Part shown: piece after piece, positions 2,400-63,849 of the stretch
Position numbering within the stretch: position 1 is the first letter of the stretch
Layout: each line of letters opens with the position of its first letter
NCBI RefSeq assembly: GCF_964194025.1
Contig: NC_134479.1
Location: 11,346,001 to 11,410,000, forward strand
Direction: 5' to 3'
DNA length: 64,000 nt
DNA from: Convolutriloba macropyga
Taxonomy: Eukaryota
The notes under the pieces: generated by a model
What the model was told of the DNA's origin: nothing
What the model saw: only the letters and a program-made list of their open reading frames with translations
Database searches by the model: none
Made by a program: the position numbers and the translations under genes

Positions 2400-2439
<40 letters not shown>

Positions 2440-2499
2440 GTCATTACTAAATTATTATTGTTATTTTTTTTGTCATTATTATTATTATTCTTATTATTG

Positions 2500-2534
<35 letters not shown>

Positions 2535-2781: not shown

Positions 2782-2827
<46 letters not shown>

Positions 2828-2842
2828 TCATATATATATATT
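1835..2842. repeat. degenerate (TTA)n/(TA)n microsatellite with N run
   Basis: Direct inspection. Confidence 0.95.
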
Positions 2843-23202: not shown

Positions 23203-23598
23203 GCTCTGAGCAGCTCTACCTCAACACAAACAGGCCTTTTTAAAGGCCACCAAACCTTCTAAAGTTACCTTACTAGCTAGTAAGCTCAAGCTATGTAGCT
23301 AGCAAGCTCAAAACAAGCTAATTGTCTTAATTTAAGCTTGAGTTGAGGTATCTGAACTTTGTTCAAAAACTCTTATTTCTTTCAGCTAATCAGAGTTCGA
23401 GAAACTGTTAGGCTATTTGGGAGCTCTTTTCTCGCACTCTGATTGGCTGCCACTGTTAGGCTATTTGGGAGCGCTTTTCTCGCACTCTGATTGGCTTAGC
23501 AACATAAGGGTTTTTGGAACGCATTTTTAACTTAGGTAGCCATATGTGAGTCTGGGTAACAACCATTTACAACAGACGAAGAAACAAGACGAAGAGAG

Positions 23599-29031: not shown

Positions 29032-29433
29032 ATGTCAGGCAAAGGAGGCAAATCGAAGAGCGGCAAGGTGGGAGCTAAGGCCAAGACCCGATCAAGCCGA
29101 GCTGGACTGCAGTTCCCCGTAGGCAGAATCCACCGATTCATCCGCAAGGGCAACTACGCTGAGAGGGTGGGAGCTGGAGCCCCAGTGTACCTTGCTGCTG
29201 TGCTTGAGTACTTGACTGCTGAGATCTTGGAGCTTGCTGGCAACGCTGCTAAGGACAACAAGAAGTCGAGAATCATCCCCCGACACTTGCAGCTCGCTAT
29301 CAGAAACGACGAGGAGCTGAACAAGCTGCTGCAAGGAGTGACCATTGCTCAAGGTGGTGTGCTACCCAACATCCAAGCAGTGCTCTTGCCCAAGAAACAG
29401 TCTTCCTCTCAGCCCAAGTCTGACAAGAAGTAA
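29032..29433 (+). CDS. H2A: histone H2A
   Basis: Intact ORF + stem-loop. Confidence 0.99.
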
Positions 29434-30689
29434 AGAAGCTTCTAGCTTGCTACTTCAACACCGGCCTTTTTAAAGGCCACCAAACCTTCGAAGTTACCTT
29501 ACTGGCTTCAGCTTACTACCTAGCAAGCTCAAATTAAGCTAAATGTCTTATTTTAAGCTCGAATTGAGGTATTTGAACTTCATTCAAAAACCCTTATTTG
29601 GTTCAGCCAATCAGATTGCGAGAAAGTCTTAGGCTATTTGGGAGCTCTTTTCTCGCACTCTGATTGGCTGAGAGCTCAATATACTGTTAGGCTACTTTGG
29701 GAGCTCTTTTCTCGCACTGTGATTGGCTGAAAAAGTGACGTGATATGACGTGGAAGCCGGCGTGCCTACGTGGCTGTTTTCTCACACTGTGGTTGGCTAA
29801 GCTCAATATGGGCTTTTGAACGACTTTTTATATTTAGGTAGCAAAAAAGTTGGGTGCCCCAACCCAACCCAAGACGACAGATGAGGAGCTAGATGAAGAG
29901 TACGCAGTATCACACTTTCTCAGCAACAACGGTAAGCCGACTTAGTTGTGTCTCTTAGTCTCTTTTCCAAGAGGCGAGGCTTTAGTTGCGCGCCACCCCC
30001 CCTCCCAAAGGCCCCTGCCAGAACTGCGCTGCCAATCTACACTACGCGGGAGTAGAGGCTGAGTCTACGCGGGACAACCCGGCCACCATAGCACTTACTC
30101 CTGAGCTAGCTCGCACTGAGTCAAGAGTACCTGGTGCTATAAGTTAGAGTGTTGGCGGTACCACTTGCACTTCGGTTCCGTCGAGAGCACAAGCCCAGGT
30201 TTAGACACCAAAGGGTTGGCGTACTCTCACGAACGCAACACTCGCCACCCCGAGCATCCTTTTCAGGAAGCTCGAGCTAGCTCTAGGACCTGCAAGCTCC
30301 CTGGTGTAACCGCTCCAAGAAGAATTCCCTCGAACGCTGAGACTAGTTGGAGGCAAAGGAATCCCGGTGTTAGCCGTCCTGAGCCGAAAACTTGAGGCTA
30401 GCACTACAGTCTATAGATAGGCGGTAAGCTGCTAGTCTCACTCTCAGTGAGAGGGGGACCGAGCAAGACGTCGCGAGGACGAGCAAAGAAAGTGCTAGAC
30501 GTCGCGAGACGCCGCGAGACGCCGCGATCCCAGACGAAGAGGGTGCAAGAAGACAGCTCTGCCCACATAGTGGGTGAAGATAAGAGAAGCACCACCGCAC
30601 TCTGCTTGTCCAGCCTGAACCAATAAGCTCCTGTGTTGGGACATCGAACATCGCCTCTCTCCCTTTCTGTCATCGAGTCACGAGCCCCT

Positions 30690-31110
30690 TTTTAACTGTA
30701 CAAAGATCAAGCTCTTCTACCAACTCGAAGAAGAGAACTCTCATCTCGAGCTCTTAGACTGTACAAACATCCAACTCGAGCTTCATAGACAACAACTCCA
30801 TTTTTATCCCTGTACAAAGACGAACCCTGTATAAACTCTCATCTCGAGCTTTTAGACTGTACAAACCTCCAACTCGAGCTTTTAGACAACAACTCTACTT
30901 TTACCTCTGTACAAAGACGAACCCTGTACAAACTCTCATTTCGAGCTTTTAGACAACTCCACTTTTACCTCTGTACAAAGACGAACCCTGTACAAACTCT
31001 CATCTCGAGCTTTTAGATTGTACAAACTTACAACTCGAGCTTTCATCAACCCCTGCTTCAAGCTTTTACCCCTGTACAAACATCAATTTCGAGCTTTTTA
31101 CAACTCTAGT
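30690..31110 (+). repeat. family-A-specific degenerate tandem repeats in 5' UTR
   Basis: Recurring CTGTACAAA and CTCGAGCTTTTAGAC; also ~47795-48215. Confidence 0.8.
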
Positions 31111-31129
31111 CTTTCAAGCCAACTCAGTA

Positions 31130-32338
31130 ATGTCTCTTCGCAATCCTTTCTCTCTTAATGCGAAGATCTTCCACCCAGCTGCCTCAACAGTGAACTGTTC
31201 TGCTCCAAGTCTTGACATATCTCAAGCCTCCAACCTCGACCAAAGTCTAGCAACGAGCCACAACCAAAGCCAGAGAAAACGCAAAGCAACTGATGGACCC
31301 CGAACCAGCTCCAAGATTAGAAAGAGGCAACCTGAGCAACATATTAAAGTAGTCTACTTCACATTTGAACATGAGACACCGAGCCACAAAGAATTCAACC
31401 AGCAGCTGAAAAACTTAACTGGCAACCCAAACTACGGAGAAGTGAGGCGAAGTCAGAACGGAAAAGGCTACTCGATGAAACCACGAACTATCGAGATAGC
31501 AAAGATGATTACTGCAAACAAAGTCAAGGAAGCATTCGCAAACTACCAAGTCAAACTAAGCACTGCTGCCTCCAACCCGGTGAAACCGAGCTTCGTCATA
31601 ACAAGTGTAGACCAAGACATCGATCCTGAAGACGTTAAAAGTGAGCTGCAAAGTCAGAACATAGAGGCAACATCAGTACATAGAATAACAAGTCGTGCAA
31701 CCAACCAACCTACGAGGCTCATAAGAGTGTTTACAAACACAGAGACAACTGCCAGGAATGCTGTTGACAACGGTGTCAAAATTTTCAATCAGAGAAAGAG
31801 ATGTGAGCGATCGAGACTAGAGCCCTCGGTAGTACAATGCTTCAAATGCCTCCAATATGACCACAAGGCGAAGGACTGCCCAAACAATCTCAAATGTAGA
31901 CGATGTGGCGGAGAGCATGTTATAAGAGAATGCGATGTTGCTCCAGAAAGTGCCAAATGCTCTAACTGCGGAGAGAGTCACTCTGCAAATTATCGAGGCT
32001 GCTCCAAGTACCAAGAAGCACGAGCCAGCAGCTATGCTGATGCAGTGAAGAGCAAGGCCCACTCTAGTCCACAAAGCTCTCTGAACAAGATCGAAGAAGT
32101 GGCTGAACTAAACAACAAGATCAATCTGGCGGAGCAAAGAGAACAAAACAGCATGACAATTATTGCAGCCATGATACAATGCTTCTTCGACTCCCCAAAG
32201 CAGAAGATAAACATCCTCCAGGCTCTAAACGTTGTCTCTGGTCATAACTACAGCCAAGTTAAATATGATGCAAAGATTAGAGAATTCAAGCATCAATTCG
32301 CAAGCCAACGAACATCAACTCAACATGGCAAACCTTAA
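31130..32338 (+). CDS. LINE ORF1 nucleic-acid-binding protein, three CCHC knuckles (78-bp in-frame deletion vs copy A2)
   Basis: CFKCLQYDHKAKDC, CRRCGGEHVIREC, CSNCGESHSANYRGC. Confidence 0.9.
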   Translation: MSLRNPFSLNAKIFHPAASTVNCSAPSLDISQASNLDQSLATSHNQSQRKRKATDGPRTSSKIRKRQPEQHIKVVYFTFEHETPSHKEFNQQLKNLTGNPNYGEVRRSQNGKGYSMKPRTIEIAKMITANKVKEAFANYQVKLSTAASNPVKPSFVITSVDQDIDPEDVKSELQSQNIEATSVHRITSRATNQPTRLIRVFTNTETTARNAVDNGVKIFNQRKRCERSRLEPSVVQCFKCLQYDHKAKDCPNNLKCRRCGGEHVIRECDVAPESAKCSNCGESHSANYRGCSKYQEARASSYADAVKSKAHSSPQSSLNKIEEVAELNNKINLAEQREQNSMTIIAAMIQCFFDSPKQKINILQALNVVSGHNYSQVKYDAKIREFKHQFASQRTSTQHGKP

Positions 32339-34988
32339 AGTAGCTCAACTGAACGTCAGAGGCTTGAGACCAAAGCTCAGAGTTATTGAACCAGTTTTAT
32401 TAGACAAGGGCATTCATGTAGCCTGTTTTAACGAGACAAAAACGAAGCAGCCTCCTCATCTGCGAAATTTTATCTTAGCTGCAAGCATTAACGACAATAT
32501 ACATGGCTCAGCCATATATATAAGAGAGGGACTAAACTACTCACTGCTAGACAACAAATTCGTCAAAAACAACTCTAAAACCAACGAGAAGCTGCATATA
32601 AGACTCAAAGAATCTGATGTTGACATTACTCTGATATACTGTTCACCCGGCAATGAGATTGAAGCAAGTCACTTGGTCAGGCACAATACAAAATGCATAG
32701 TGGTGGGAGATTTTAATCTCCAGAACATAAACATCAACCCTATGTCCACAAAGAGCGATGCAACAGGTCGAGTCGTTGAGGAACTTCTGGATGAAGAATA
32801 CATACTTCTGAATAACGACTTCAAAACGCATGAGAAGGGATCCGTTTTAGACCTGCACCTGTGCTCTAAGCCTTTGGCAAAACACTTTGTGAAGTTCGAA
32901 ATATTTGAAGAGACTCTGAGCGACCACTATATGACCATCAGCGAATTTAACCTGCGAGCTCCAAAATCTAGATCACTGTGGCCAAATTGGAAATGCTTCA
33001 GAGAGAAAGTGAGTTGCTACAGAAGCCAGTATGCAGATTTGAACAGCAGAGCAGAAAGCATAGCAACCCACATTAAGACGTGTTACGAGAGCAGCCTCAA
33101 AGAAGCTAAGCCAATACAAAACAAAGAAATAGTCGCGCTCACCAGAAAGAAACACCAGCTGCAGAGAAAAGTCAGAAAGCTGAGAAGACTGGGCATGAGG
33201 GGATACTCAGAGGAGAGATACCTCACATCAGAGCTCAATAGAACATCGAGAAAGCTCTCACAATCACTAATACAAGAAAGGCAGAATCAAGAACTGAAGA
33301 TGGTGGCCAGCATGAACTCAAATGGGAAGGGCATCGATTTCTGGAAGGCCTACAAGAAACTCACGCAATCTAGCAAGAGCAATGCAAACCAGCTTAAAAT
33401 TAGCACGCAGGAGGCAGCAGATAAATTTGCTGAGAAGCTGAAACAGAATATGAGAATGCATGAGGCTGTAACTCAGGAAGCTAAAGAGATTGAAGATCTA
33501 GTTGAAACATGCGTGAACGAGAATGAAATAGCACAGTTTCGCCTGCCCCCTAACCACCATGAAACTACAGTCGAGGTTGAACAACTGAGAAGCATCATTA
33601 AAGGGAGGAAAAACACAGCTCCAGGACCTGACGGAATATCGTACAAAATATTGAAACAGCTACCAGACGCTATAATGAAAGAACTCAGTGACATAATACA
33701 AAGCTCTCTAAAAGATGGAATTGTGCCTGACTGCTGGAAAAGATCCAATGTCTCTATGCTGCCCAAGCCAAATAAAGACCACTCTGATCTCAAGAATTAC
33801 AGACCTCTCTCCCTCACAAGTTGCATCGGTAAATTGTGCGAAGTTGTTACCAAGGAGCACTTAAACAAGCACTGTGAAAGTAACGATATCTTCACCAACG
33901 CGCAAGGCGCATACAGAGCAGGTCGCTCTACAACTGATAATTTACTCTGCTTAAGCGAACATATTTTCAGTGAAGCCCTCTGGAAGCAGCCAACCGCAGC
34001 AGCTTTTCTCGATGTTCAGCAGGCATTCGATGCGGTGTGGCATAAAGGACTAATCTATAAAATGCAGCTAAACAAAGTGCCAGAGTGGATCATAAAATGG
34101 ACCGTAAGCTATCTCAAAGACCGAGAGCTGACTGTAATATACCAACAGGCTGTGGCCAACAGCTTTAAACCAAGTGCAGGAGTACCACAGGGCAGCGTAA
34201 TCAGCCCTACACTGTTCAACATCTATGTCAGCAGTCCAGAAGTCTCGAATGCAAAAGTCTCTCAATATGCAGATGATATTGCAATATACACGAGTGGCAG
34301 AAACTGTAGAGCAGCTACTTTCAAACTACAGAAGGCTCTCAACTCACTGGACATGTGGTGCAACCTTTGGAAAATCAAAATTAATCCCGAGAAAACAAAC
34401 TTCATGCTATTGACCAGAAATAGAGACAAAAGCCACCACCATCTCAAACTGCAAGACGTAATTCTAAATCCATCGAAGTCGTCTACTTTTCTCGGAGTTG
34501 AGTTGAATGATAATCTAACTTGGGCGGCGCAGATCAGGAAGATTGAAAACAAGATGTTTGGGAGAATAAATGGACTCATGATGCTGAAAGCGAAAGGTGT
34601 CAACTCTAAGTGCCTCATATTACTATATAGAGCAACGATACGACCAATTATGGAGTATGCTTCGCCGGCATGGGCGAATGCTCCCAAGCACAGCATCATG
34701 AGACTTCAAAGAAAACAAAACAAAGCCATAAGAGTAGCATTAGATCTACCCAGATGGACGTCGTCAGATGAGCTACATAACGCAGCAAACCTTCCCAGAG
34801 TGAGCACACTTCTAGCCCAGAGAAATATACAATACCTCAAGAGAGCTTCTAGCAACAACGCAGCAATAAGAGAACTGATCCAAGATCAACTTACTAAAAC
34901 GACCACTGAACTCCAATACATTACACCTGTACAGACGATACTGTTTGAAACAGCGAAAAATAGACTCGACAATATGGGCAGTCCCTAG
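32325..34988 (+). CDS. LINE ORF2: APE endonuclease + reverse transcriptase (887 aa)
   Basis: QLNVRG, NETK, GDFN, LDL, SDH; APGPDGI, NYRPLSLTS, LDVQQAFD, GVPQGS, QYADD; ATG 32325 chosen by homology with family B start. Confidence 0.95.
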   Translation: MANLKVAQLNVRGLRPKLRVIEPVLLDKGIHVACFNETKTKQPPHLRNFILAASINDNIHGSAIYIREGLNYSLLDNKFVKNNSKTNEKLHIRLKESDVDITLIYCSPGNEIEASHLVRHNTKCIVVGDFNLQNININPMSTKSDATGRVVEELLDEEYILLNNDFKTHEKGSVLDLHLCSKPLAKHFVKFEIFEETLSDHYMTISEFNLRAPKSRSLWPNWKCFREKVSCYRSQYADLNSRAESIATHIKTCYESSLKEAKPIQNKEIVALTRKKHQLQRKVRKLRRLGMRGYSEERYLTSELNRTSRKLSQSLIQERQNQELKMVASMNSNGKGIDFWKAYKKLTQSSKSNANQLKISTQEAADKFAEKLKQNMRMHEAVTQEAKEIEDLVETCVNENEIAQFRLPPNHHETTVEVEQLRSIIKGRKNTAPGPDGISYKILKQLPDAIMKELSDIIQSSLKDGIVPDCWKRSNVSMLPKPNKDHSDLKNYRPLSLTSCIGKLCEVVTKEHLNKHCESNDIFTNAQGAYRAGRSTTDNLLCLSEHIFSEALWKQPTAAAFLDVQQAFDAVWHKGLIYKMQLNKVPEWIIKWTVSYLKDRELTVIYQQAVANSFKPSAGVPQGSVISPTLFNIYVSSPEVSNAKVSQYADDIAIYTSGRNCRAATFKLQKALNSLDMWCNLWKIKINPEKTNFMLLTRNRDKSHHHLKLQDVILNPSKSSTFLGVELNDNLTWAAQIRKIENKMFGRINGLMMLKAKGVNSKCLILLYRATIRPIMEYASPAWANAPKHSIMRLQRKQNKAIRVALDLPRWTSSDELHNAANLPRVSTLLAQRNIQYLKRASSNNAAIRELIQDQLTKTTTELQYITPVQTILFETAKNRLDNMGSP

Positions 34989-35424
34989 GACTTTTTATCG
35001 CAATTTCAATTCAATCAATCTTTTCTTTTAATCGACTTTCTATCTCTTTCTGATGGCCTGTGTGTTTTATTGAGCAACGGACATATGGAACATATACACA
35101 GCATATACACAACAACACTCATCATCTTCTTCTTCTCTTCTTCACTTTTTGGTGGCCTAATTTCAATTCTGACTCTGACTCTTTCTCTTTGCAACACGAG
35201 CAACAATAGACGTCTAGTTGGGTTCCATGACTGAGAGCACGATCTGAGAAAGAACACACGAAGACAAGAGACGGGTTTGAAAGGCTCAATCTCAGCGAGC
35301 CAAAGAAACTCAAGTCCCCCCCTCGGGAGACCTACAGCCTCGGTACAATGGGTGCCCCAACCCAACCCAACACAACTACAACTACAACTAGTAAAAGAGG
35401 AGCAGCAGAGGACAGCAAGAGGAA

Positions 35425-35793
35425 ATGGCACCCAAAGTGAGCGGCAAAGCAGTGAAGAAGGCAGGCAAGGCACAGAAGAAGCCCTCTGGTGACAAGAAGA
35501 AGAAAAAGAAGAGGAGAGAGACCTACTCCCTCTACATCTACAAGGTGCTGAAGCAGGTCCACCCCGACACCGGCATCTCCTCCAAAGCTATGTCGATCAT
35601 GAACTCGTTCGTGAACGATATCTTTGAGAGGATAGCTGGAGAAGCTTCGAGACTGGCCCACTACAACAAGCGATCAACCATCTCAAGCCGGGAGATCCAG
35701 ACTGCAGTGAGGCTCTTGCTACCAGGAGAGTTGGCCAAGCATGCTGTGAGCGAGGGAACCAAAGCTGTGACCAAATACACCAGCTCCAAGTAA
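35425..35793 (+). CDS. H2B: histone H2B (separated from its promoter by element A1)
   Basis: Intact ORF + stem-loop. Confidence 0.95.
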
Positions 35794-36712
35794 AGTCCGT
35801 TGCTACTTAAGCAACAACACACAGGCCTTTTTAAAGGCCACCAAACCTTTTGAAGTTAACTTAATAGCTGCAATGAAGCTCAAAACAAGCTAACTTGAAG
35901 CTAAAAACCTTATTTTCAAAGTTGCCGGTACCCTTATTCTATGTATTTTCGAGCTATAGCTAGCTCGAGCTCAACTTAGCTAGCTTGAGCTTGAGCTAGC
36001 TAGTTTGAGCTTGAGCTAGCTAGTGTGAGCTTCAGCTAGCTAGTGTGAGCTTGAGCTAGCTAGCTCGAGCTTGAGCTTGATAGCTTGAGCTTGAGCTAGC
36101 TGGCTTGAGCTTGCTATCTTGAGCTTGAGCTTGAGCTTGCTAGCTTGAGCTTGCTAGCTTGAGCTTGCCAGCTTGAGCTTGAGCTTGCTGGCCTGAGCTT
36201 GAGCTTGCTAGCTGCAGTTAGAGCTAACTTGAGCTCTCTGCCAATCAGAGTTCGAGAAAAGCGCTCCCAATTAGCCTAACAGTGGCAGCCAATCAGAGTG
36301 CGAGAAAAGCGCTCCCAAATAGCCTAACAGTGGCAGCCAATCAGAGAGCTAGAAAATCAAAATTGCATAGAATATAAGTACCTGCAGCTCTGAGCAGAGG
36401 TGAAGGTCCGAGCAGGCTTGATCGGGCATAGGCGAAGGTCCGAGCAGGCTTGCTCGGACCTTCGCCTATGCCCGAGCAAGCCTGCTGGGACCTTCACCGC
36501 TGCTCAGAGCTGCAGGTACTTATATTCTATGCAGTTTTGATTTTCTAGCTCTCTGATTGGCTGCCACTGTTAGGCTATTTGGGAGCGCTTTTCTCGCACT
36601 CTGATTGGCTTAGCAACATAAGGGTTTTTGGAACGCATTTTTAACTTAGGTAGCCATATGTGAGTCTGGGTAACAACCATTTACAACAGACGAAGAAACA
36701 AGACGAAGAGAG

Positions 36713-37114
36713 ATGTCAGGCAAAGGAGGCAAATCGAAGAGCGGCAAGGTGGGAGCTAAGGCCAAGACCCGATCAAGCCGAGCTGGACTGCAGTTCCCCG
36801 TGGGCAGAATCCACCGATTCATCCGCAAGGGCAACTACGCTGAGAGGGTGGGAGCTGGAGCCCCAGTGTACCTTGCTGCTGTGCTTGAGTACTTGACTGC
36901 TGAGATCTTGGAGCTTGCTGGCAACGCTGCTAAGGACAACAAGAAGTCGAGAATCATCCCCCGACACTTGCAGCTCGCTATCAGAAACGACGAGGAGCTG
37001 AACAAGCTGCTGCAAGGAGTGACCATTGCTCAAGGTGGTGTGCTACCCAACATCCAAGCAGTGCTCTTGCCCAAGAAGCAGTCTTCCTCTCAGCCCAAGT
37101 CTGACAAGAAGTAA
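36713..37114 (+). CDS. H2A: histone H2A
   Basis: Intact ORF + stem-loop. Confidence 0.99.
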
Positions 37115-38400
37115 AGAAGCTTCTAGCTTGCTACTTCAACACCGGCCTTTTTAAAGGCCACCAAACCTTCGAAGTTACCTTACTGGCTTCAGCTTACTAC
37201 CTAGCAAGCTCAAATTAAGCTAAATGTCTTATTTTAAGCTCGAATTGAGGTATTTGAACTTCATTCAAAAACCCTTATTTGGTTCAGCCAATCAGATTGC
37301 GAGAAAGTGTTAGGCTATTTGGGAGCTCTTTTCTCGCACTCTGATTGGCTGAGAGCTCAATATACTGTTAGGCTACTTTGGGAGCTCTTTTCTCGCACTG
37401 TGATTGGCTGAAAAAGTGACGTGATATGACGTGGAAGCCGGCGTGCCTACGTGGCTGTTTTCTCACACTGTGGTTGGCTAAGCTCAATATGGGCTTTTGA
37501 ACGACTTTTTATATTTAGGTAGCAAAAAAGTTGGGTGCCCCAACCCAACCCAATTGCATTTACAATTGGAACAACCATTTACAAGACGACAGATGAGGAG
37601 CTAGATGAAGAGTTCGCAGTATAACACTTTCTCAGCAACGACGATAAGCCGACTTAGTTGTGTCTCTTAGTCTCTTTTCCAAGAGGCGAGGCTTTAGTTC
37701 CGCGCCACCCCCCTTCCCAAAGGCCCCTGCCAGAACTGCGCTGCCAATCTACACTACGCGGGAGTAGAGGCTGAGTCTACGCGGGACGACCCGGGCACCA
37801 AAGCACTTACTCCTGAGCTAGCTCGCACTAAGTCAAGAGTACCTGGTGGTATAATTAGAGTGTTGGCGGTACCACTTGCACTTCGGTTCCGTCGAGAGCA
37901 CAAGCCCAGGTTTAGACACCAAAGGGTTGGCGTACTCTCACGAACGCAACACTCGCCACCCCGAGCATCCTTTTCAGGAAGCTCGAGCTAGCTCAGGACC
38001 TGCAAGCTCCCTGGTGTACCCCCGTACCAAGAAGAATTCCCTCGAACACTAAGCCCTAGTCTGAAGCAAAGGAATCCCGGTGTTAGCCGTCCTGAGCTGA
38101 GGGCTTGATTCTAGCACTACGGCCTATAGATAGGAGGTAAGCTGCTAGTTTCACGCTTAGTGAGAGGGGGACCGAGCAAGACGCCGCGAGGACGACCTAA
38201 GAGAGTGCTAGACGCCACGAGACGCCGCGATCCCCGACGAAGAGAGTGCAAGACGCCGCGATCCCAGACGAAGAGGGTGCAAGAAGACAACTCTGCCCAC
38301 ATAGTGGGTGAAGACCAGAAGCACCGAAGACCAGAAGCAAGTACCTCTCTCCCTAGCCTCTGACCCCTCAATACGCGAGTCCTTCTGCTGAATACTCCCA

Positions 38401-39675
38401 ATGGCACACCGAAACCCCCTCGCTCGACCCTTCTTCCCCAACAGCTCGATGAACAACAACGCAGTGAACTGCTCAGATGCCAACCAGAGCCTAAATATGA
38501 CCGCCTTGACCAACATTAGCTCAGTCAGTCAACAAGGAACCAAGAGGAAAGCCCAAGACAGTGGTCCCCGAACAAGCTCCAAAGTCCGAAGAACCCAAAG
38601 TGACAGACCCAAAGTGATCTACTTCTCCTTTGACACACCAGTACCGAGCCTCAAAGACTTCAACCTCAAGCTGATTGCCCTGACCAACTGCCAGAACTAT
38701 GGAGAACTAAGGAAGTCCAAGAACGGCAAAGGCTTCTCCATCAAGCCAAAGACCACTGACATAGCCAAGACAATTACCCCGAGCAAAGTTACCACAGCCT
38801 TCCCCAACAGCAAAGTGAGACTGAGCACCATGACCACCAACAACTCAAAGCCAAGCTTCGTTATCACTAACATCGATCTCGATGTACAAACTGATGACAT
38901 CAAGACCGAGCTACAGAACCAACACATTGACGCTGAGACTGTGCACAGAATTACTAGCAGAGCCACCAACAACCCAACCCGACTAGTTAGAGTGTTCACC
39001 TCCTCTGAAGCCAACGCAAGAACAGCGGTAGAAAATGGGGTCTCTATCTTCAACCAACGCAAGAGATGTGAGAAATCAAGACAAGAGCCTCAAGTGATCC
39101 AATGTTTCAAGTGCCTCGAGTTTGGACACTGGAGCCATGAATGCTGTAACAGCGTAAAGTGTCGAAGATGCGGAGGCGAGCATCTCGTAAAAGACTGCGC
39201 ACAAACTGAACAAGAGACTAAGTGCCCAAACTGTGGAGAGAACCACTCCTCCAACTACCGAGGATGTGCAAAGTACCAGGAGGCAAAGTCAATCAGCTAT
39301 GCTCAAGCAGTCAAGAAGAGCCAACCAGAAACCTCTACCGCTTTCACGAAAATAGAGAAGATGTTAGAAACAATGAATGAGAGACTCAGCAACATCGAAG
39401 ACAAACTAACGCAGAGAGTAAAGACTTTAGAAGACCAAACAGCCCAGCTGACCATAAAGACAAGTTCAATCGAAAACAGCCAACTGAACAACTTCATGAC
39501 TCTCGCAGCCCTCATACAGTGCACACTAGACTCCTCACAAAAGAAGATTAACATCATGCAAGCTCTAAACTTCATCACAGGACAGACAATCAGCAATTCT
39601 CAGTTTGACGCGAAAGTGAAAGAATTCAAACAATACTTCGCCAGCCACAAAATCACATCTCAACATGGCAGATAA
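38401..39675 (+). CDS. LINE ORF1, three CCHC knuckles + predicted coiled coil
   Basis: CFKCLEFGHWSHEC, CRRCGGEHLVKDC, CPNCGENHSSNYRGC. Confidence 0.92.
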   Translation: MAHRNPLARPFFPNSSMNNNAVNCSDANQSLNMTALTNISSVSQQGTKRKAQDSGPRTSSKVRRTQSDRPKVIYFSFDTPVPSLKDFNLKLIALTNCQNYGELRKSKNGKGFSIKPKTTDIAKTITPSKVTTAFPNSKVRLSTMTTNNSKPSFVITNIDLDVQTDDIKTELQNQHIDAETVHRITSRATNNPTRLVRVFTSSEANARTAVENGVSIFNQRKRCEKSRQEPQVIQCFKCLEFGHWSHECCNSVKCRRCGGEHLVKDCAQTEQETKCPNCGENHSSNYRGCAKYQEAKSISYAQAVKKSQPETSTAFTKIEKMLETMNERLSNIEDKLTQRVKTLEDQTAQLTIKTSSIENSQLNNFMTLAALIQCTLDSSQKKINIMQALNFITGQTISNSQFDAKVKEFKQYFASHKITSQHGR

Positions 39676-42337
39676 CTTGACAGTTCTACAACTCAATGTT
39701 AGAGGGATGAGATCCCAACTTAGACTACTCGACACTCTACTAAGTGACAAAGGCGCTCATGTTGCCTGCTTCAATGAAACCAAGACAAAACAGCCGCCAA
39801 GACTCAAAGACTTCATCTTAGCTGCAAGCATTGACGACAACAAACATGGCTCAGCCATCTATGTTAGACGCGGACTCAGCTTCAAGCTCATCAACATCAA
39901 AGTTGTAAAATCAGACTCCAAAACCAACGAGATGCTACACATCAGACTCACGGACTCCAACATCGACATCATACTAATCTACTGCTCTCCTGACTTAGCC
40001 ATCGAACCAACCCACCTCCAATACTCAAATAGAAGAACTCTCATACTGGGTGACTTCAACATCAAATGTCCATACATTAACCCCAAATCATACAGCTTCA
40101 ATGCAACTGGACGAACAGTAGAGGAACGACTAGATGACGGCCTTGTGCTGCTGAATGACGACAGTGCAACGCACAAGAGTGGCTCAATCCTAGATCTCCA
40201 GCTCAGCACGATTGACCTCGCCTCGGACCTTGCATCTTTTCACACTGCAGACGGAACTTTAAGTGATCATCTAATGACGATAAGCCAATTTAACATCAAT
40301 GCTCCGAAACCCTACTATCTAAGACCAGATTGGAAGCAGTTCAAGAGGAAAGTGGCGGAATTCACCAACAGCACAGATGAACTAGATGAGAAGGCTAAAG
40401 AGCTGGCAACTCACATCAAGCGCTGCTATGACGACTGCCTAAGACCTCAACGACGAAGCTCCAACAAAGAAATAGCCAATCTAATCAAGACCAAGCATCG
40501 AATACAGAGGAGAGTCAGAAAACTCAGACGAAATGGACTAAGGGGTGATATGGACGAAAGAGAACTGACAGCTGAACTAAACAGAGTCTCAAAACAACTG
40601 ACCAGAACAATTAAGCTTGAGAAGCAACAACAAGAGAATAAACTGATTGAACAGCTCAATGACGACAAAAACTGCCAGAACTTCTGGAAGGCCTTCCACA
40701 GACTCAACAAAGACAATCAGCACAGCACAAATCGACTCAAGATGACTACACAAGAGGCTGCAAACAGCTTCGCAAACTCCCTCCAGCAGACCATGGTGAC
40801 GCACAGACCCGAGACAACTGAAGCGAGCGATCATCAAGAAGAAGTTGAGAGAAATATTGACGAAGCTGCGATAGACGCCTATGAAACACCAAGAGAACAC
40901 TGGCAAACTGATTTACGACCACAACTGCTTAGACGACTGATTTCTGAGAGAAAGAACACAGCCCCAGGCGATGACCAAGTTTCTTATAAGATCCTGAAAC
41001 AACTGCCAGACAACATCATAGAGAACCTCTGCGAACTCATTCAAGAATCACTCAAACGAGGCAAGATACCAACGTGCTGGAAGAAGGCCAAAGTCTGCAT
41101 GCTCCCTAAACCAGGCAAGGATCACACGAACATCAAGAATTACAGACCCCTCTCTTTGACAAGCTGCATTGGCAAACTAGGCGAAATTATCGTAAAGGAG
41201 CATCTGACCAAACACTGCGAGGACTTAAACGTATTCGGAAACACCCAAGGTGCATACAGAGCGAAGAGATCAACTGTTGACAATCTGCTATGCCTGACTC
41301 AACACGCCTTCAGCGAAGCTCTCTGGAAACGACCAACTGCAGCAGTCTTTCTTGACGTACAACAAGCATTTGATGCAGTGTGGCACAAGGGACTACTCTA
41401 CAGACTCCAGGAGAACAAAGTTCCAATGTGGATCATCAAATGGACCAAAGACTACCTCAAGAACAGAGAACTGAAAGTTGTGTACCAGCAAGCTGTAGCA
41501 GAGAGCTTCGTCCCAAGTGCCGGTGTCCCTCAAGGAGGAGTTATAAGTCCAGTTCTTTTCAACATCTATGTCAGCAAACCCGAAGTAGCAACAGCCAATG
41601 TTTCCCAGTATGCAGATGATATAGCACTCTACACGACCAACGCAACCTGCAAAGCAGCCACTCTAAGACTACAAAGAGCACTCGACACACTTGACCACTG
41701 GTGCAACCTGTGGAAGATCAAACTCAATCCTGACAAGACGCACTTCATGCTCATCACTCGTCTGAAAGACAAACAACAACTACTGACCCTCAAAGGAGCA
41801 CAATTGAAGACAACAAAGAAAACAACCTTTTTAGGAGCAGAAATATCAGACAGCTTGACTTGGACTGAGCACATCAACAAAGTTGAACAGAAAGTTTTCG
41901 CCAGGACAAACGGACTCAAAATACTCAAAGCTAAAGGAATCAGCTCTAAAAGCCTAATCAAACTTTACAAGATGACTATCAGACCAATCATGGAGTACGC
42001 CTCACCAGCCTGGGCCAATGCTTCGAACTCACTCTTACAAAGACTACAGATACTACAAAACAGAGCACTGAAGACAGCACTAGATCTACCTCCTTGGACA
42101 TCCAGGACAGAAGTACACAGCAAAGCTAACATACCGACCATGACTGAATACTTGACGAGACGCAACATCAACTACCTGAAACAAGCATCGAAGTACAACT
42201 CCTCTATAAGAGAACTCATCCAAGATGAACTGAAGACAGTACAAACCGATAGCAACCTCAGGACTCCGATACAGACGATACTGTTCCAAACAGCACTTGA
42301 GCGGCTCTCGATTTCATCAACTGACGTTCCAAATTAA
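39665..42337 (+). CDS. LINE ORF2: APE endonuclease + reverse transcriptase (890 aa)
   Basis: QLNVRG, NETK, GDFN, SDH, NYRPLSLTS, GVPQGG, QYADD. Confidence 0.95.
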   Translation: MADNLTVLQLNVRGMRSQLRLLDTLLSDKGAHVACFNETKTKQPPRLKDFILAASIDDNKHGSAIYVRRGLSFKLINIKVVKSDSKTNEMLHIRLTDSNIDIILIYCSPDLAIEPTHLQYSNRRTLILGDFNIKCPYINPKSYSFNATGRTVEERLDDGLVLLNDDSATHKSGSILDLQLSTIDLASDLASFHTADGTLSDHLMTISQFNINAPKPYYLRPDWKQFKRKVAEFTNSTDELDEKAKELATHIKRCYDDCLRPQRRSSNKEIANLIKTKHRIQRRVRKLRRNGLRGDMDERELTAELNRVSKQLTRTIKLEKQQQENKLIEQLNDDKNCQNFWKAFHRLNKDNQHSTNRLKMTTQEAANSFANSLQQTMVTHRPETTEASDHQEEVERNIDEAAIDAYETPREHWQTDLRPQLLRRLISERKNTAPGDDQVSYKILKQLPDNIIENLCELIQESLKRGKIPTCWKKAKVCMLPKPGKDHTNIKNYRPLSLTSCIGKLGEIIVKEHLTKHCEDLNVFGNTQGAYRAKRSTVDNLLCLTQHAFSEALWKRPTAAVFLDVQQAFDAVWHKGLLYRLQENKVPMWIIKWTKDYLKNRELKVVYQQAVAESFVPSAGVPQGGVISPVLFNIYVSKPEVATANVSQYADDIALYTTNATCKAATLRLQRALDTLDHWCNLWKIKLNPDKTHFMLITRLKDKQQLLTLKGAQLKTTKKTTFLGAEISDSLTWTEHINKVEQKVFARTNGLKILKAKGISSKSLIKLYKMTIRPIMEYASPAWANASNSLLQRLQILQNRALKTALDLPPWTSRTEVHSKANIPTMTEYLTRRNINYLKQASKYNSSIRELIQDELKTVQTDSNLRTPIQTILFQTALERLSISSTDVPN

Positions 42338-42680
42338 TGGACAAACCTACAAATCTTTACAAACTCAATTCAGCTTTTTCTTTATGACTTCATGACAATC
42401 TTCTCTTTTGGTGGCCTTAGATGACAAAGCAATGCAAAGTGCAAATCGACAACTCCTTCGACATCTCTCTTCCACAACGAACCTGACGACCAGACGCAAA
42501 ACCATGTACAGACCAAACATTGACTACAACTGCAAAGCAAGACGCGAGTTTACAAGGCTTCTTGAAAAGAAGCCAAAGAAGCTCAAGACAACCCCCTTCA
42601 CACACGGGTGCCCCAACCCAACCCAACACAACTACAACTACAACTAGTAAAAGAGGAGCAGCAGAGGACAGCAAGAGGAA

Positions 42681-43049
42681 ATGGCACCCAAAGTGAGCGG
42701 CAAAGCAGTGAAGAAGGCAGGCAAGGCACAGAAGAAGCCCTCTGGTGACAAGAAGAAGAAAAAGAAGAGGAGAGAGACCTACTCCCTCTACATCTACAAG
42801 GTGCTGAAGCAGGTCCATCCCGACACTGGCATCTCCTCCAAAGCTATGTCGATCATGAACTCGTTCGTGAACGATATCTTTGAGAGGATAGCTGGAGAAG
42901 CTTCGAGACTGGCCCACTACAACAAGCGATCAACCATCTCAAGCCGGGAGATCCAGACTGCAGTGAGGCTCTTGCTACCAGGAGAGTTGGCCAAGCACGC
43001 TGTGAGCGAGGGAACCAAAGCTGTGACCAAATACACCAGCTCCAAGTAA
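42681..43049 (+). CDS. H2B: histone H2B (downstream of element B1)
   Basis: Intact ORF + stem-loop. Confidence 0.95.
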
Positions 43050-44051
43050 AGTCCGTTGCTACTTAAGCAACAACACACAGGCCTTTTTAAAGGCCACCAA
43101 ACCTTTTGAAGTTAACTTAATAGCTGCAATGAAGCTCAAAACAAGCTAACTTGAAGCTAAAAACCTTATTTTCAAAGTTGCCGGTACCCTTATTCTATGT
43201 ATTTTCGAGCTATAGCTAGCTCGAGCTCAACTTAGCTAGCTTGAGCTAGCTAGTTTGAGCTTGAGCTAGCTAGTGTGAGCTTCAGCTAGCTAGTGTGAGC
43301 TTGAGCTAGCTAGCTCGAGCTTGAGCTTGAGCTAGCTGGCTTGAGCTTGCTAGCTTGAGCTTGAGCTTGCTAGCTTGAGCTTGCTAGCTTGAGCTTGCCA
43401 GCTTGAGCTTGAGCCTGCTGGCTTGAGCTTGAGCTTGCTAGCTGCAGTTAGAGCTAACTTGAGCTCTCTGCCAATCAGAGTGCGAGAAAAGCGCTCCCAA
43501 ATAGCCTAACAGTGGCAGCCAATCAGAGTGCGAGAAAAGCGCTCCCAAATAGCCTAACAGTGGCAGCCAATCAGAGAGCTAGAAAATCAAAATTGCATAG
43601 AATATAAGTACCTGCAGCTCTGAGCAGAGGTGAAGGTCCGAGCAGGCTTGCTCGGGCTTAGGCGAAGGTCCGAGCAAGCTTGCTCGGGCAAAGGCCAAGG
43701 TCCGAGCAAGCTTGCTCGGGCAAAGGCGAAGGTCCGAGCAAGCTTGCTCGGGCATAGGCGATGGTCCGAGCAAGCTTGCTCGGGCATAGGCGAAGGCCCG
43801 AGCAAGCTACCTCTAAGCTCCAAAACTGCCAAAACCCTTATTCTATATAACTCCTCAAAAGCTCTCAGCCAATCAGAGTGCGAGAAAAGCGCTCCCAAAT
43901 AGCCTAACAGTGGCAGCCAATCAGAGTGCGAGAAAAGCGCTCCCAAATAGCCTAACAGTGGCAGCCAATCAGAGTGCGAGAAAAGAGCTCTAAAATAGCC
44001 TAACAGTTGATTCAAGCTCTAAGCCAATGAGAGATCACTAGTTCGGGGTAG

Positions 44052-46537: not shown

Positions 46538-48226
46538 AGAAGCTTCTAGCTTGCTACTTCAACACCGGCCTTTTTAAAGGCCACCAAACCTTCGAAGTTA
46601 CCTTACTGGCTTCAGCTTACTACCTAGCAAGCTCAAATTAAGCTAAATGTCTTATTTTAAGCTCGAATTGAGGTATTTGAACTTCATTCAAAAACCCTTA
46701 TTTGGTTCAGCCAATCAGATTGCGAGAAAGTGTTAGGCTATTTGGGAGCTCTTTTCTCGCACTCTGATTGGCTGAGAGCTCAATATACTGTTAGGCTACT
46801 TTGGGAGCTCTTTTCTCGCACTGTGATTGGCTGAAAAAGTGACGTGATATGACGTGGAAGCCGGCGTGCCTACGTGGCTGTTTTCTCACACTGTGGTTGG
46901 CTAAGCTCAATATGGGCTTTTGAACGACTTTTTATATTTAGGTAGCAAAAAAGTTGGGTGCCCCAACCCAACCCAACCCAAGACGACAGATGAGGAGCTA
47001 GATGAAGAGTACGCAGTATCACACTTTCTCAGCAACAACGATAAGCCGACTTAGTTATATCTCTTAGTCTCTTTTCCAAGAGGCGAGGCTTTAGTTGCGC
47101 GCCACCCCCCCTCCCAAAGGCCCCTGCCAGAACTGCGCTGCCAATCTACACTACGCGGGAGTTGAGGCTGAGTCTACGCGGGACAACCCGGCCACCATAG
47201 CACTTACTCCTGAGCTAGCTCGCACTGAGTCAAGAGTACCTGGTGCTATAAGTTAGAGTGTTGGCGGTACCACTTGCACTTCGGTTCCGTCGAGAGCACA
47301 AGCCCAGGTTTAGACACCAAAGGGTTGGCGTACTCTCACGAACGCAACACTCGCCACCCCGAGCATCCTTTTCAGGAAGCTCGAGCTAGCTCTAGGACCT
47401 GCAAGCTCCCTGGTGTAACCGCTCCAAGAAGAATTCCCTCGAACGCTGAGACTAGTTGGAGGCAAAGGAATCCCGGTGTTAGCCGTCCTGAGCCGAAAAC
47501 TTGAGGCTAGCACTACAGTCTATAGATAGGCGGTAAGCTGCTAGTCTCACTCTCAGTGAGAGGGGGACCGAGCAAGACGTCGCGAGGACGAGCAAAGAAA
47601 GTGCTAGACGTCGCGAGACGCCGCGAGACGCCGCAATCCCAGACGAAGAGGGTGCAAGAAGACAACTCTGCCCACATAGTGGGTGAAGATAAGAGAAGCA
47701 CCACCGCACTCTGCTTGTCCAGCCTGAACCAATAAGCTCCTGTGTTGGGACATTGAACATCGCCTCTCTCCCTTTCAGTCATCGAGTCACGAGCCCCTTT
47801 TTAACTGTACAAAGATCAAGCTCTTCTACCAACTCGAAGAAGAGAACTCTCATCTCGAGCTCTTAGACTGTACAAACATCCAACTCGAGCTTCATAGACA
47901 ACAACTCCATTTTTACCTCTGTACAAAGACGAACCCTGTATAAACTCTCATCTCGAGCTTTTAGACTGTACAAACCTCCAACTCGAGCTTTTAGACAACA
48001 ACTCTACTTTTACCTCTGTACAAAGACGAACCCTGTACAAACTCTCATTTCGAGCTTTTAGACAACTCCACTTTTACCTCTGTACAAAGACGAACCCTGT
48101 ACAAACTCTCATCTCGAGCTTTTAGACTGTACAAACTTACAACTCGAGCTTTCATCAACCCCTGCTTCAAGCTTTTACCCCTGTACAAACATCAATTTCG
48201 AGCTTTTTACAACTCTAGTCTTTCAA

Positions 48227-49275
48227 CCTGAGCAACATATTAAAGTAGTCTACTTCACATTTGAACATGAAACACCGAGCCACAAAGAATTCAACCAGCA
48301 GCTGAAAAACTTAACTGGCAACCCGAACTACGGAGAAGTGAGGCGAAGTCAGAACGGAAAAGGCTACTCGATGAAACCAAGAACTATCGAGATAGCAAAG
48401 ATGATTACTGCAAACAAAGTCAAGGAAGCATTCGCAAACTACCAAGTCAAACTAAGCACTGCTGCCTCCAACCCGGTGAAACCGAGCTTCGTCATAACAA
48501 GTGTAGACCAAGACATCGATCCTGAGGACGTTAAAAGTGAGCTGCAAAGTCAGAACATAGAGGCAACATCAGTACATAGAATAACAAGTCGTGCAACCAA
48601 CCAACCTACGAGGCTCATAAGAGTGTTTACAAACACAGAGACAACTGCCAGGAATGCTGTTGACAACGGTGTCAAAATTTTCAATCAGAGAAAGAGATGT
48701 GCAAATGCTTCCAATATGACCACAAGGCGAAGGACTGCCCGAACAATCTCAAATGTAGACGATGTGGCGGAGAGCATGTTATAAGAGAATGCGATGTTGC
48801 TCCAGAAAGTGCCAAATGCTCTAACTGCGGAGAGAGTCACTCTGCAAATTATCGAGGCTGCTCCAAGTACCAAGAAGCACGAGCCAGCAGCTATGCTGAT
48901 GCAGTGAAGAGCAAGGCCCACTCTAGTCCACAAAGCTCTCTGAACAAGATCGAAGAAGTCCTCAGCAACATCGACAAGAGGCTCGAGAAAATAGAGAGCA
49001 ACCTCACTGAAAGGGTCCAAATACTTGAGAACAAAGTGGCTGAACTAAACAACAAGATCAATCTGGCGGAGCAAAGAGAACAAAACAGCATGACAATTAT
49101 TGCAGCCATGATACAATGCTTCTTCGACTCCCCAAAGCAGAAGATAAACATCCTCCAGGCTCTAAACGTTGTCTCTGGTCATAACTACAGCCAAGTTAAA
49201 TATGATGCAAAGATTAGAGAATTCAAGCATCAATTCGCAAGCCAACGATCATCAACTCATCATGGCAAACCTTAA
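48227..49275 (+). pseudogene. ORF1 remnant (start deleted, frameshift at ~48702)
   Basis: 213-bp and ~37-bp deletions vs A1. Confidence 0.85.
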
Positions 49276-51866
49276 AGTAGCTCAACTGAACGTCAGAGGC
49301 TTGAGACCAAAGCTCAGAGTTATTGAACCAATTTTATTAGACAAGGGCATTCATGTAGCCTGTTTTAACGAGACAAAAACGAAGCAGCCTCCTCATCTGC
49401 GAAATTTTATCTTAGCTGCAAGCATTAACGACAATATACATGGCTCAGCCATATATATAAGAGAGGGACTAAACTACTCACTGCTAGACAACAAATTCGT
49501 CAAAAACAACTCTAAAACCAACGAGAAGCTGCATATAAGACTCAAAGAATCTGATGTTGACATTACTCTGATATACTGTTCACCCGGCAATGAGATTGAA
49601 GCAAGTCACTTGGTCATGCACAATACAAAATGCATAGTGGTGGGAGATTTTAATCTCCAGAACATAAACATCAACCCTATGTCCACAAAGAGCGATGCAA
49701 CAGGTCGAGTCGTTGAGGAACTTCTGGATGAAGAATACATACTTCTGAATAACGACTTCCAAACGCATGAGAAGGGATCCGTTTTAGACCTGCACCTGTG
49801 CTCTAAGCCTTTGGCAAAACACTTTGTGAAGTTCGAAATATTTGAAGAGACTCTGAGCGACCACTATATGACCATCAGCGAATTTAACCTGCGAGTTCCA
49901 AAATCTAGATCACTGCGGCCAAATTGGAAATGCTTCAGAGAGAAAGTGAGTTGCTACAGAAGCCAGTATGCAGATTTGAACAGCAGAGCAGAAAGCATAG
50001 CAACCCACATTAAGACGTGTTACGAGAGCAGCCTCAAAGAAGCTAAGCCAATACAAAACAAAGAAATAGTCGCGCTCACCAGAAAGAAACACCAGCTGCA
50101 GAGAAAAGTCAGAAAGCTGAGAAGACTGGGCATGAGAGGATACTCAGAGGAGAGATACCTCACATCAGAGCTCAATAGAACATCGAGAAAGCTCTCACAA
50201 TCACTAATACAAGAAGGGCAGAATCAAGAACTGAAGATGGTGGCCAGCATGAACTCAAATGGGAAGGGCATCGATTTCTGGAAGGCTTACAAGAAACTCA
50301 CGCAATCTAGTAAGAGCAATGCAAACCAGCTCAAAATTAGCACGCAGGAGGCAGCAGATAAATTTGCTGAGAAACTGAAACAGAATATGAGAATGCATGA
50401 GGCTGTCACTCAGGAAGCTGAAGAGATTGAAGATCTAGTTGAAACATGCGTGAACGAGAATGAAATAGCACAGTTTCGCCTGCCCCCTAACCACCGCGAA
50501 ACTACAGTCGAGGTTGAACAACTGAGAAACATCATCAAAGGGAGGAAAAACACAGCTCCAGGACCTGACGGAATATCGTATAAAATATTGAAACAGCTAC
50601 CAGACGCAATAATGAAAGAACTCAGTGACATAATACAAAGCTCTCTAAAAGATGGAATTGTGCCTGACTGCTGGAAAAGATCCAATGTCTCTATGCTGCC
50701 CAAGCCAAATAAAGACCACTCTGATCTCAAGAATTACAGACCTCTCTCCCTCACAAGTTGCATCGGTAAATTGTGCGAAGTTGTTACCAAGGAGCACTTA
50801 AACAAGCACTGTGAAAGTAACGATATCTTCACCAAGGCGCAAGGCGCATACAGAGCAGGTCGCTCTACAACTGATAATTTACTCTGTTTAAGCGAACATA
50901 TTTTCAATGAAGCCCTCTGGAAGCAGCCAACCGCAGCAGCTTTTCTCGATGTTCAGCAGGCATTCGATGCGGTGTGGCATAAAGGACTAATCTATAAAAT
51001 GCAGCTAAACAAAGTGCCAGAGTGGATCATAAAATGGACCGTAAGCTATCTCAAAGACCGAGAGCTGACTGTAATATACCAACAGGCTGTGGCCAACAGC
51101 TTTAAACCAAGTGCAGGAGTACCACAGGGCAAAAGTCTCTCAATATGCAGATGATATTGCAATATACACGAGTGGCAGAAACTGTAGAGCAGCTACTTTC
51201 AAACTACAGAAGGCTCTCAACTCACTGGACATGTGGTGCAACCTTTGGAAAATCAAAATTAATCCCGAGAAAACAAACTTCATGCTATTGACCAGAAATA
51301 GAGACAAAAGCCACCACCATCTCAAACTGCAAGACGTAATTCTAAATCCATCGAAGTCGTCTACTTTTCTCGGAGTTGAGTTGAATGATAATCTAACTTG
51401 GGCGGCGCAGATCAGGAAGATTGAAAACAAGATGTTTGGGAGAATAAATGGACTCATGATGCTGAAAGCGAAAGGTGTCAACTCTAAGTGCCTCATATTA
51501 CTATATAGAGCAACGATACGACCAATTATGGAGTATGCTTCGCCGGCATGGGCGAATGCTCCCAAGCACAGCATCATGAGACTTCAAAGAAAACAAAACA
51601 AAGCCATAAGAGTAGCATTAGATCTACCCAGATGGACGTCGTCAGATGAGCTACATAACGCAGCAAACCTTCCCAGAGTGAGCACACTTCTAGCCCAGAG
51701 AAATATACAATACCTCAAGAGAGCTTCTAGCAACAACGCAGCAATAAGAGAACTGATCCAAGATCAACTTACTAACACGACCACTGAACTCCAATACATT
51801 ACACCTGTACAGACGATACTGTTTGAAACAGCGAAAAATAGACTCGACAATATGGGCAGTCCCTAG
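49262..51866 (+). pseudogene. ORF2 (APE-RT), frameshifted by 59-bp deletion at ~51131
   Basis: Split into 49169-51154 and 51111-51866 between GVPQG and YADD. Confidence 0.9.
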
Positions 51867-52302
51867 GACTTTTTATCGCAATTTCAATTCAATCAATCTT
51901 TTCTTTTAATCGACTTTCTATCTCTTTCTGATGGCCTGTGTGTTTTATGGAGCAACGGACATATGGAACATATACACAACATATACACAACAACACTCAT
52001 CATCTTCTTCTTCTCTTCTTCACTTTTTGGTGGCCTAATCTCAATTCTGACTCTGCGTCTTTCTCTTTGCAACACGAGCAACGCAAGACGTCTAGTTGGG
52101 TTCCATGACTGAGAGCACGATCTGAGAAAGAACAAACGAAGACAAGAGACGGGTTTGAAAGGCTCAATCTCAGCGAGCCAAAGAAATTCAAGTCCCCCCC
52201 TTGGGAGACTTACAGCCTCGGTACAATGGGTGCCCCAACCCAACCCAACACAACTACAACTACTACTAGTAAAAGAGGAGCAGCAGAGGACAGCAAGAGG
52301 AA

Positions 52303-63495: not shown

Positions 63496-63849
63496 ATGGA
63501 CAAACCTCTAAATCTTTACAAATACAATTCAACTTTTTCTTCCCATACTTCAAGACATTAACTACTTTCTTACTTCTCTTTTGGTGGCCTAAGACGACAA
63601 AGCAATGCAAGGTGCAAACTGACATCTACCTCATCTCTCTTCTCTTACCCAATCCTGACGAATAGACGCAAAACCAAGAACTGACCAAACAAGAGACTGC
63701 AAAGCAAGACGCGAGTTTACACGGCTTCTTGAAAAGAGGCCATAGAAGCTCAAGACAAACCCCTTCACTTCACAGGGTGCCCCAACCCAAACCAACACAA
63801 CTACAACTACAACTAATAAAAGAGGAGCAGCAGAGGACAGCAAGAGGAA

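Follow-up and report, generated by a model that had tools for sequence, protein, structure and literature searches.

Retrotransposons in the H2B leader of Convolutriloba macropyga carry a conserved sequence antisense to the histone mRNA 3′ end

Introduction

To our knowledge, among metazoan mRNAs only the replication-dependent histone messages terminate in a stem-loop in place of poly(A), and we know of no mobile element that exploits or counters this signal. We analyzed a 64-kb stretch of Convolutriloba macropyga DNA (NC_134479.1, positions 11,346,001 to 11,410,000; here called the window), in which a tandem histone array is broken up by four non-LTR retrotransposons. A first-pass annotation had pointed out a short sequence in the 3′ UTR of each element that is antisense to the histone mRNA 3′ end, and had proposed that the element RNA pairs with such ends. 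The locus therefore raises the question of why these retrotransposons hold a sequence antisense to the 3′-end signal of their host genes: does it pair with that signal, and in which RNA, or does the match have another role or none?

Results

Four retrotransposons occupy one site in the H2B leader

The histone genes of the window all lie on the plus strand in the order H2B–H3–H4–H2A, and each ends in the hairpin GGCCTT-TTTA-AAGGCC followed by ACCAAA. The array is interrupted by four elements, each between an H2A and an H2B gene:

29873–35348, plus strand: element A1, in the H2B leader with a 22-bp target duplication; ORF1 31130–32338, ORF2 32232–34988 (APE and RT)
37554–42605, plus strand: element B1; ORF1 38401–39675, ORF2 39665–42337
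46977–52226, plus strand: element A2; ORF2 broken
58711–63774, plus strand: element B2; ORF2 broken, 5′ boundary approximate

The element ends were placed by the 22-bp target duplication TGGGTGCCCCAACCCAACCCAA, which flanks the elements; their 3′ ends have no A-tail. Comparison of empty and filled units showed that the insertion lies in the H2B leader, in the orientation of the gene and ~30 bp past a TATA-like box, with the H2A stem-loop ~370 bp upstream and the H2B stem-loop ~420 bp downstream. All four copies have the duplication, the same target and the same orientation but differ in their 5′ junctions. The A2 5′ junction contains an extra CCCAA, and the 5′ starts of the B copies (37554–37584 and 58711–58729) show a short match to the H2A leader (BLAST against 23558–23579, E 0.01).

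The ORFs are open in A1 and B1 and broken in A2 and B2. ORF2 of both A1 and B1 matched Pfam Exo_endo_phos_2/Exo_endo_phos plus RVT_1, indicating an APE-type endonuclease followed by a reverse transcriptase. Judged by these domains, the shared site and the duplication, the A and B elements are site-specific APE-type non-LTR retrotransposons; their best database relatives are unnamed. The ORF2 proteins of A and B are 57% identical, and the first ~700 nt of their 5′ UTRs are ~91% identical.

The stretch from H2B to the next H2A in a unit without H3 and H4 contains palindromic repeat arrays of the GAGCT/AGCTAG type and a perfect hairpin with 22-bp arms (35950–36220 and 36425–36472), with sub-threshold matches to microRNA families in Rfam.

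The motif is complementary to every histone 3′ end in the window

The motif TTTGGTGGCCT has 29 exact matches in the window, against 0.02 expected. On the plus strand it occurs only at 35148, 42407, 52026 and 63580, once per element and always in the 3′ UTR, which confirms the positions first reported. The minus strand holds the other 25 matches, every one of them corresponding to the AGGCCACCAAA at the 3′ end of a histone gene (H2B, H3, H4 or H2A). At 25 of 25 histone 3′ ends in the window, the stem-loop 3′ arm and the ACCAAA that follows it are exactly complementary to the motif, and the description of the motif as the reverse complement of the arm and tail common to H2A, H2B, H3 and H4 therefore holds in full.

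35148–35158, plus strand: motif TTTGGTGGCCT in the A1 3′ UTR, 190 nt before the element end
42407–42418, plus strand: motif in the B1 3′ UTR as the 12-nt match TTTGGTGGCCTT; its 11-nt core stops at 42417, 188 nt before the element end
52026–52036, plus strand: motif in the A2 3′ UTR, 190 nt before the element end
63580–63590, plus strand: motif in the B2 3′ UTR, 184 nt before the element end
35122–35147, plus strand: pyrimidine tract before the A1 motif; tract and motif are 96–100% conserved against A′, an A-type copy that is 11% diverged

A pyrimidine tract directly precedes the motif in all four copies, and the earlier spacing of 184–190 nt to the element end was likewise borne out in four of four. 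The match reaches 12 nt in B1 (…GGCCTT) and 11 nt in A1, A2 and B2.

When aligned, the A and B 3′ UTRs are ~50% identical. Their longest invariant run is TTTTGGTGGCCT, at 12 nt, with the next at 5 nt (two of three MAFFT modes). The first-pass statement that these UTRs otherwise align poorly agrees with this identity but misses a second conserved element, a hairpin ~40–75 nt from the 3′ end, which was detected with RNAalifold:

35273–35311, plus strand: conserved 3′ hairpin of A1
42545–42584, plus strand: conserved 3′ hairpin of B1
52151–52189, plus strand: conserved 3′ hairpin of A2
63712–63751, plus strand: conserved 3′ hairpin of B2

The predicted hairpin has an outer stem GGGUUU/AAACUC and an inner stem GGCUC/GAGCC in A or GGCUU…/…AAGCC in B, with one compensatory pair, and is a likely recognition site for the reverse transcriptase.

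By BLAST, it is not uncommon for an 11-mer to match at some position of the 4-kb histone unit (E 0.6 for A1 and 0.13 for B1). That the sole conserved 12-nt block should land on the ~26-nt stem-loop core has, by our own rough count, a probability of ~1e-5 to 1e-4. The match to the histone 3′ end is not a chance match, and the perfect retention of the motif across the deep A/B split argues for selection. Moreover, the motif covers the single-stranded ACCAAA tail and one arm only, which is the right shape for strand invasion; tail plus one arm is the only antisense form that is usable, because a full antisense hairpin would fold on itself. The motif has no partner arm on either strand.

In the stretch scanned with Rfam (29400–43200), the Histone3 model (RF00032; 6-bp stem, 4-nt loop) matched at 29458, 35819, 37139 and 43075, all real histone 3′ ends, and gave no match in the element UTRs at E up to 10. 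A U7-like RNA or a mimic of the histone stem-loop in the UTR was rejected for lack of any Rfam match at the same threshold. The upstream tract pairs with the HDE region over at most 4 bp, as judged by eye. Extended inverted-H2B homology around the motif was not significant (B1 z 1.9, B2 z 0.2, A1 UTR 130–360 z −0.3). The 5′ UTR was also considered as a captured sense histone 3′ flank, which found no BLAST support.

The motif is a feature of the A/B lineage

Relatives in protein databases led us to ENA assemblies from the same or a very close species (ERZ25071359) and from another species (ERZ25878734 and ERZ25071366). The motif was exact in four more A/B-type copies, namely the A′ copy (L008) and the B-type copies L007, L010 and L011. 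L008 is an off-target A-type copy, 11% diverged from A1; it lies outside any histone array (400–5853), with a ~23-bp target duplication and a 3′ end without H2B sequence. The B-type copies represent two subfamilies and one copy that is 8.5% diverged, and those in L007 and L010 again occupy the position between H2A and H2B. Sequencing runs containing the element include two other organisms, at word shares of 0.23 and 0.10.

Between A1 and L008, the ~190 nt downstream of the motif are 87–92% identical, and the 74 nt just upstream of the tract and motif are only 51% identical, with many gaps. The motif thus opens a conserved 3′ domain beside a fast-changing stretch. Both species sampled have the same host stem-loop, and A, A′ and B all have an unchanged motif, so that neither strand of the proposed helix offers a change with which the other could covary.

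More distant relatives gave a different picture. Family C, whose ORF2 is 46% identical to that of A1, occupies the position between H2A and H2B in another species, where the host stem-loop is identical to that in the window and the 22-bp duplication is a different leader sequence (CTGCTTCTACAACTCGACAACA). Its ~175-nt 3′ UTR contains no motif within one mismatch. A wider antisense match between family C and its host H2B 3′ end was rejected, as the duplex z of −3.5 came from scattered 6–8-bp helices and the alignment scored 24 against a null of 21.9±3.3. Copies of this family (L002 4480–8838, also L003–L006) have a 5′ UTR of ~18 nt and a 3′ UTR that repeats the ORF2 end; those in L003 and L004 have identical ORF2 and lie outside histone arrays.

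The motif is also absent from family D (L012; ~35% identity), perhaps a third lineage that makes use of the H2B leader region. Two head-to-tail copies of it (L012 9053–16926 and 16927 onward) directly follow a B2-type element, and their 3′ UTR is long, A-rich and repetitive. Four loci were uninformative: L001, whose 3′ end is missing because of a further insertion and the end of the contig; L009 and L013, which are rearranged or 3′-truncated; and L014, which has no context.

Absence of the motif from other homologues, which the first-pass annotation had named as counting against its reading, is thus seen in families C and D. As family C reaches the same site, beside the same host stem-loop, without it, the motif is not needed for H2B targeting: it is a feature of the A/B lineage and not a requirement for life in the H2B leader.

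Family A carries a second segment antisense to H2B

When the A1 UTR was aligned locally with the histone unit in inverted orientation, a second antisense segment emerged in family A:

35045–35082, plus strand: second antisense segment of A1, complementary to the H2B 3′ UTR and the stem-loop 5′ arm and loop (35795–35837)
51923–51960, plus strand: second antisense segment of A2, one substitution against A1

This 38-nt segment of A1 is H2B-specific and contains exact blocks of 12 and 10 nt in the right order. It scored 39 in the alignment, where none of 300 dinucleotide shuffles exceeded the top value of 38, and the predicted duplex had an energy of −43.9 kcal/mol, against −17.4±3.2 for shuffles (minimum −30.0; 0 of 500 reached it). 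The motif and the second segment match neighboring stretches within the final ~51 nt of the H2B message, and a pseudoknot would result if the two helices formed at once. The H2B specificity of the segment favors fold-back on the H2B stem-loop of the element's own read-through RNA over a general guide to histone mRNAs.

No block match of this kind to the H2B 3′ end is present at that place in L008, and B1 and B2 match that end at the motif only, without a second segment. The segment sits in the fast-changing stretch of the UTR and may have arisen by a recent templated insertion, not as an adaptation.

Predicted partners of the motif

The H2B 3′ ends downstream of the elements are located as follows:

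35824–35845, plus strand: H2B stem-loop and ACCAAA 3′ of A1, the proposed cis partner, ~680 nt 3′ of the motif
43080–43101, plus strand: H2B stem-loop and ACCAAA 3′ of B1
52702–52723, plus strand: H2B stem-loop and ACCAAA 3′ of A2

The 6-bp H2B hairpin alone had a predicted energy of −9.1 kcal/mol, and the helix between motif and stem-loop had −18.6 kcal/mol over 11 bp or −19.5 kcal/mol over 12 bp. When the whole read-through RNA was scanned, the motif paired best with the H2B hairpin in A1 and A2; in B1 this hairpin ranked second. In the equilibrium fold of B1 from the stop codon to ACCAAA, the local stem-loop reached a probability of 0.98 and the motif helix 0.02, which argues against fold-back pairing. 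In the A1 read-through fold, the second-segment duplex displaced the stem-loop with pair probabilities of at least 0.99; the motif helix is then a pseudoknot and falls outside that model. The proposal that the RNA folds back on its own H2B stem-loop thus draws support from the H2B-specific 38-nt segment of family A and from the lack of a poly(A) signal (see below), and is weakened by the B1 fold. A near-complement of the motif is also present at the H2B start (35427–35436, ATGGCACCCAAAG), where it is the partner of the motif in the A1 read-through MFE fold.

When the 3′ UTR was folded alone, MFE prediction gave no internal partner common to A1, B1 and B2. Such a partner was rejected, since the MFE partners differed, RNAalifold offered only the four-pair GGUGG:CCCC helix without covariation, and an ACCAAAC site was B-specific. 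The 5′ UTR has a site at 30081 in A1, 47190 in A2 and near 37790 in B1. Its A form, GGCCACCAtAG, and its B form, GGgCACCAAAG, both differ by a single change from the H3-type 3′ end GGCCACCAAAG, and both offer the motif an 8-bp partner.

The element RNA may be a co-transcript with H2B

At the 5′ end of L008 we found a transduced stretch of the H2B leader (ACCCAACCCAACCCAA…; ACCCAACCCAACCCAAGCCAA), which shows that its template RNA began at the H2B promoter. Neither AATAAA nor ATTAAA occurs between the ORF2 stop and the H2B stem-loop, and the first 3′-end signal after ORF2 is that stem-loop. With RNA that starts at H2B, no poly(A) signal or A-tail, and the stem-loop as first end signal, an element–H2B co-transcript ending at the H2B hairpin is plausible. 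Against a read-through template weigh the off-target copies L003, L004 and L008, which end at or within ~8 nt of the normal element 3′ end without H2B sequence. R1Bm is reported to need downstream target sequence, present on a read-through RNA, for accurate initiation of reverse transcription (PMC7265360, citing Anzai 2005). We count this precedent in favor of cis pairing on a co-transcript.

Discussion

Our preferred reading, held tentatively, is that the motif pairs in cis with the H2B 3′ end on the element's own read-through transcript. The motif would then be a selectively kept antisense element of the A/B lineage, with the 3′ end of the H2B message as its partner and an element–H2B co-transcript as the template RNA. 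UUUGGU, acting as a toehold, would first pair with the single-stranded ACCAAA tail. GGCCU(U) would then invade the 3′ arm of the stem-loop, opening the 6-bp hairpin in exchange for an 11–12-bp helix. In family A, the second segment would take the H2B 3′ UTR and the other half of the hairpin, so that both would jointly tie up the last ~51 nt. As a consequence, the chimeric RNA might escape ordinary histone mRNA handling, namely SLBP/U7 processing and S-phase-coupled 3′ decay; alternatively, its non-adenylated 3′ end might be protected. The broader first-pass claim that the motif RNA pairs with histone ends keeps its basis in the exact complementarity, retained in both families and in further copies, and loses ground through the absence of the motif from families C and D. 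The motif as a primer-binding site for the end of a histone mRNA or of the co-transcript was rejected, since all copies keep 184–190 nt downstream of the motif.

Two alternatives treat the complementarity as history. The tract and motif may be a recognition element, either a site for the element's own protein or the closure of a ~200-nt 3′ domain recognized by the reverse transcriptase, with the match left over from captured H2B sequence. The motif does lie at the 5′ edge of the conserved 3′ domain, fixed 184–190 nt from the end; RNAalifold pairs GGUGG with a conserved C-run past the 3′ hairpin, family A shows that inverted H2B 3′ sequence does enter this UTR, and family C reaches the same site without the motif. 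However, the proposed closing helix has four GC/GU pairs, a bulge and no covariation, the predicted internal partners differ between A1, B1 and B2, and it would have to be a coincidence that the retained part is exactly the tail and one arm, the only accessible antisense form. On balance, we consider this explanation possible, though somewhat doubtful. The second alternative, which we consider unlikely, is a functionless scar. Template switching during DNA replication or repair, seeded by short inverted repeats that the UTR has in common with the H2B 3′ end 0.5–0.7 kb downstream, would copy inverted H2B 3′ sequence into the UTR, leaving the motif as a remnant or refreshing it repeatedly. The second segment of A1 and A2 fits this, being collinear with the inverted H2B 3′ UTR, partly destroyed in the hairpin region and located in a hypervariable stretch; a self-complementary GGCC is present at the junction, and, by the BLAST statistics above, it is nothing unusual for an 11-mer to match some part of the histone unit. 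A neutral 12-mer would nevertheless hardly stay intact in both families at ~50% UTR and 57% ORF2 identity, independent gains by A and B at equal distance from the 3′ end are unlikely, and the z values around the motif give no significant extended inverted-H2B similarity.

Other alternatives keep the pairing but change the partner. The element RNP could act in trans, pairing with nascent or mature ends of any histone mRNA and thereby homing to the locus or competing with SLBP/U7. The matched 11 nt are exactly the part common to the H2A, H2B, H3 and H4 3′ ends, and stem-loops flank the insertion site on both sides. Yet the extra segment of family A points to the neighboring gene and not to all histone RNAs, a hairpin bound by SLBP would have to be opened in trans by a helix of 11 bp, family C finds the same target while lacking the motif, and no precedent for guiding by host-mRNA pairing is known to us among non-LTR elements; we regard such a guide as quite unlikely. 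That the RNP docks through the motif on the stem-loop tail of nascent histone transcripts, parked in the histone locus body by its DNA target, seems improbable as well, and slightly more so. Least credible is a 5′–3′ cyclization of the element RNA through the GGCCACCA-like site in the 5′ UTR (A1 30081; B1 has GGGCACCAAAG), which we judge very improbable. This site ranks second among the partners in A1 and third in A2, offers an 8-bp contiguous match in both A and B, and is also found in A′; against this, it differs between A and B at two positions with no compensating change in the motif, the two 8-bp matches are in different registers, the expected number of chance 8-mers in a 5.4-kb element is about 0.08, and the site is not among the eight best partners in B1.

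In their build, the A and B elements resemble R1Bm, R1, TRAS, SART and R7, with ORF1, an APE–RT ORF2, and one fixed site and orientation in a tandem multicopy gene. They further share with R1-type elements a precise 3′ junction without an A-tail and a conserved 3′ UTR hairpin; this is a likeness by features. The target differs, being the leader of a Pol II histone gene in A/B and rDNA or telomeric repeats in the R1-type. In the literature searched, we found no R1-type member with a UTR element antisense to the 3′-end signal of its host gene, and the full-text searches returned no histone-targeting non-LTR element and no retroelement UTR antisense to a histone 3′ end. SLACS/CZAR/NeSL-type elements insert in spliced-leader genes. 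Like A/B, they lie a few nucleotides past the transcription start of a tandem host gene, whose promoter drives the element; they differ in having a restriction-like endonuclease rather than an APE, and we know of no antisense element among them directed at the host RNA 3′ end.

R2 elements carry a 5′ HDV-like ribozyme that self-cleaves the co-transcript at the 5′ junction. R2 and A/B are alike in host co-transcription and in having an RNA device for the host part of the co-transcript, but the device is a ribozyme in R2 and a putative base-pairing clamp on the host 3′-end signal in A/B. Recognition of a target by a short antisense RNA is also known from the EBS–IBS pairing of group II introns and from U7 snRNA, which recognizes the HDE in the 3′ region of histone pre-mRNA. 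The A/B elements differ from these in having no ribozyme, Sm site or U7-like fold in Rfam searches, and their motif matches the stem-loop arm and tail, not the HDE or the DNA target site.

We regard the motif as a new trait of site-specific non-LTR retrotransposons; it does not set them apart as a separate kind of system. Were it a capture scar, it would still record sequence exchange between the tail of an element and the 3′ end of the neighboring gene; were docking true, non-LTR homing would be aided by RNA–RNA recognition of host transcripts. If the proposed cis pairing is true, these elements would draw on both ends of the histone gene, starting from its promoter and finishing with its 3′-end signal, and a built-in antisense clamp would control how the histone 3′ end is read. 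They would then offer a compact natural tool for following the fate of a cis-masked stem-loop in processing, export and S-phase decay, and an RNA–RNA layer would be added to the life of site-specific retrotransposons in tandem gene arrays.
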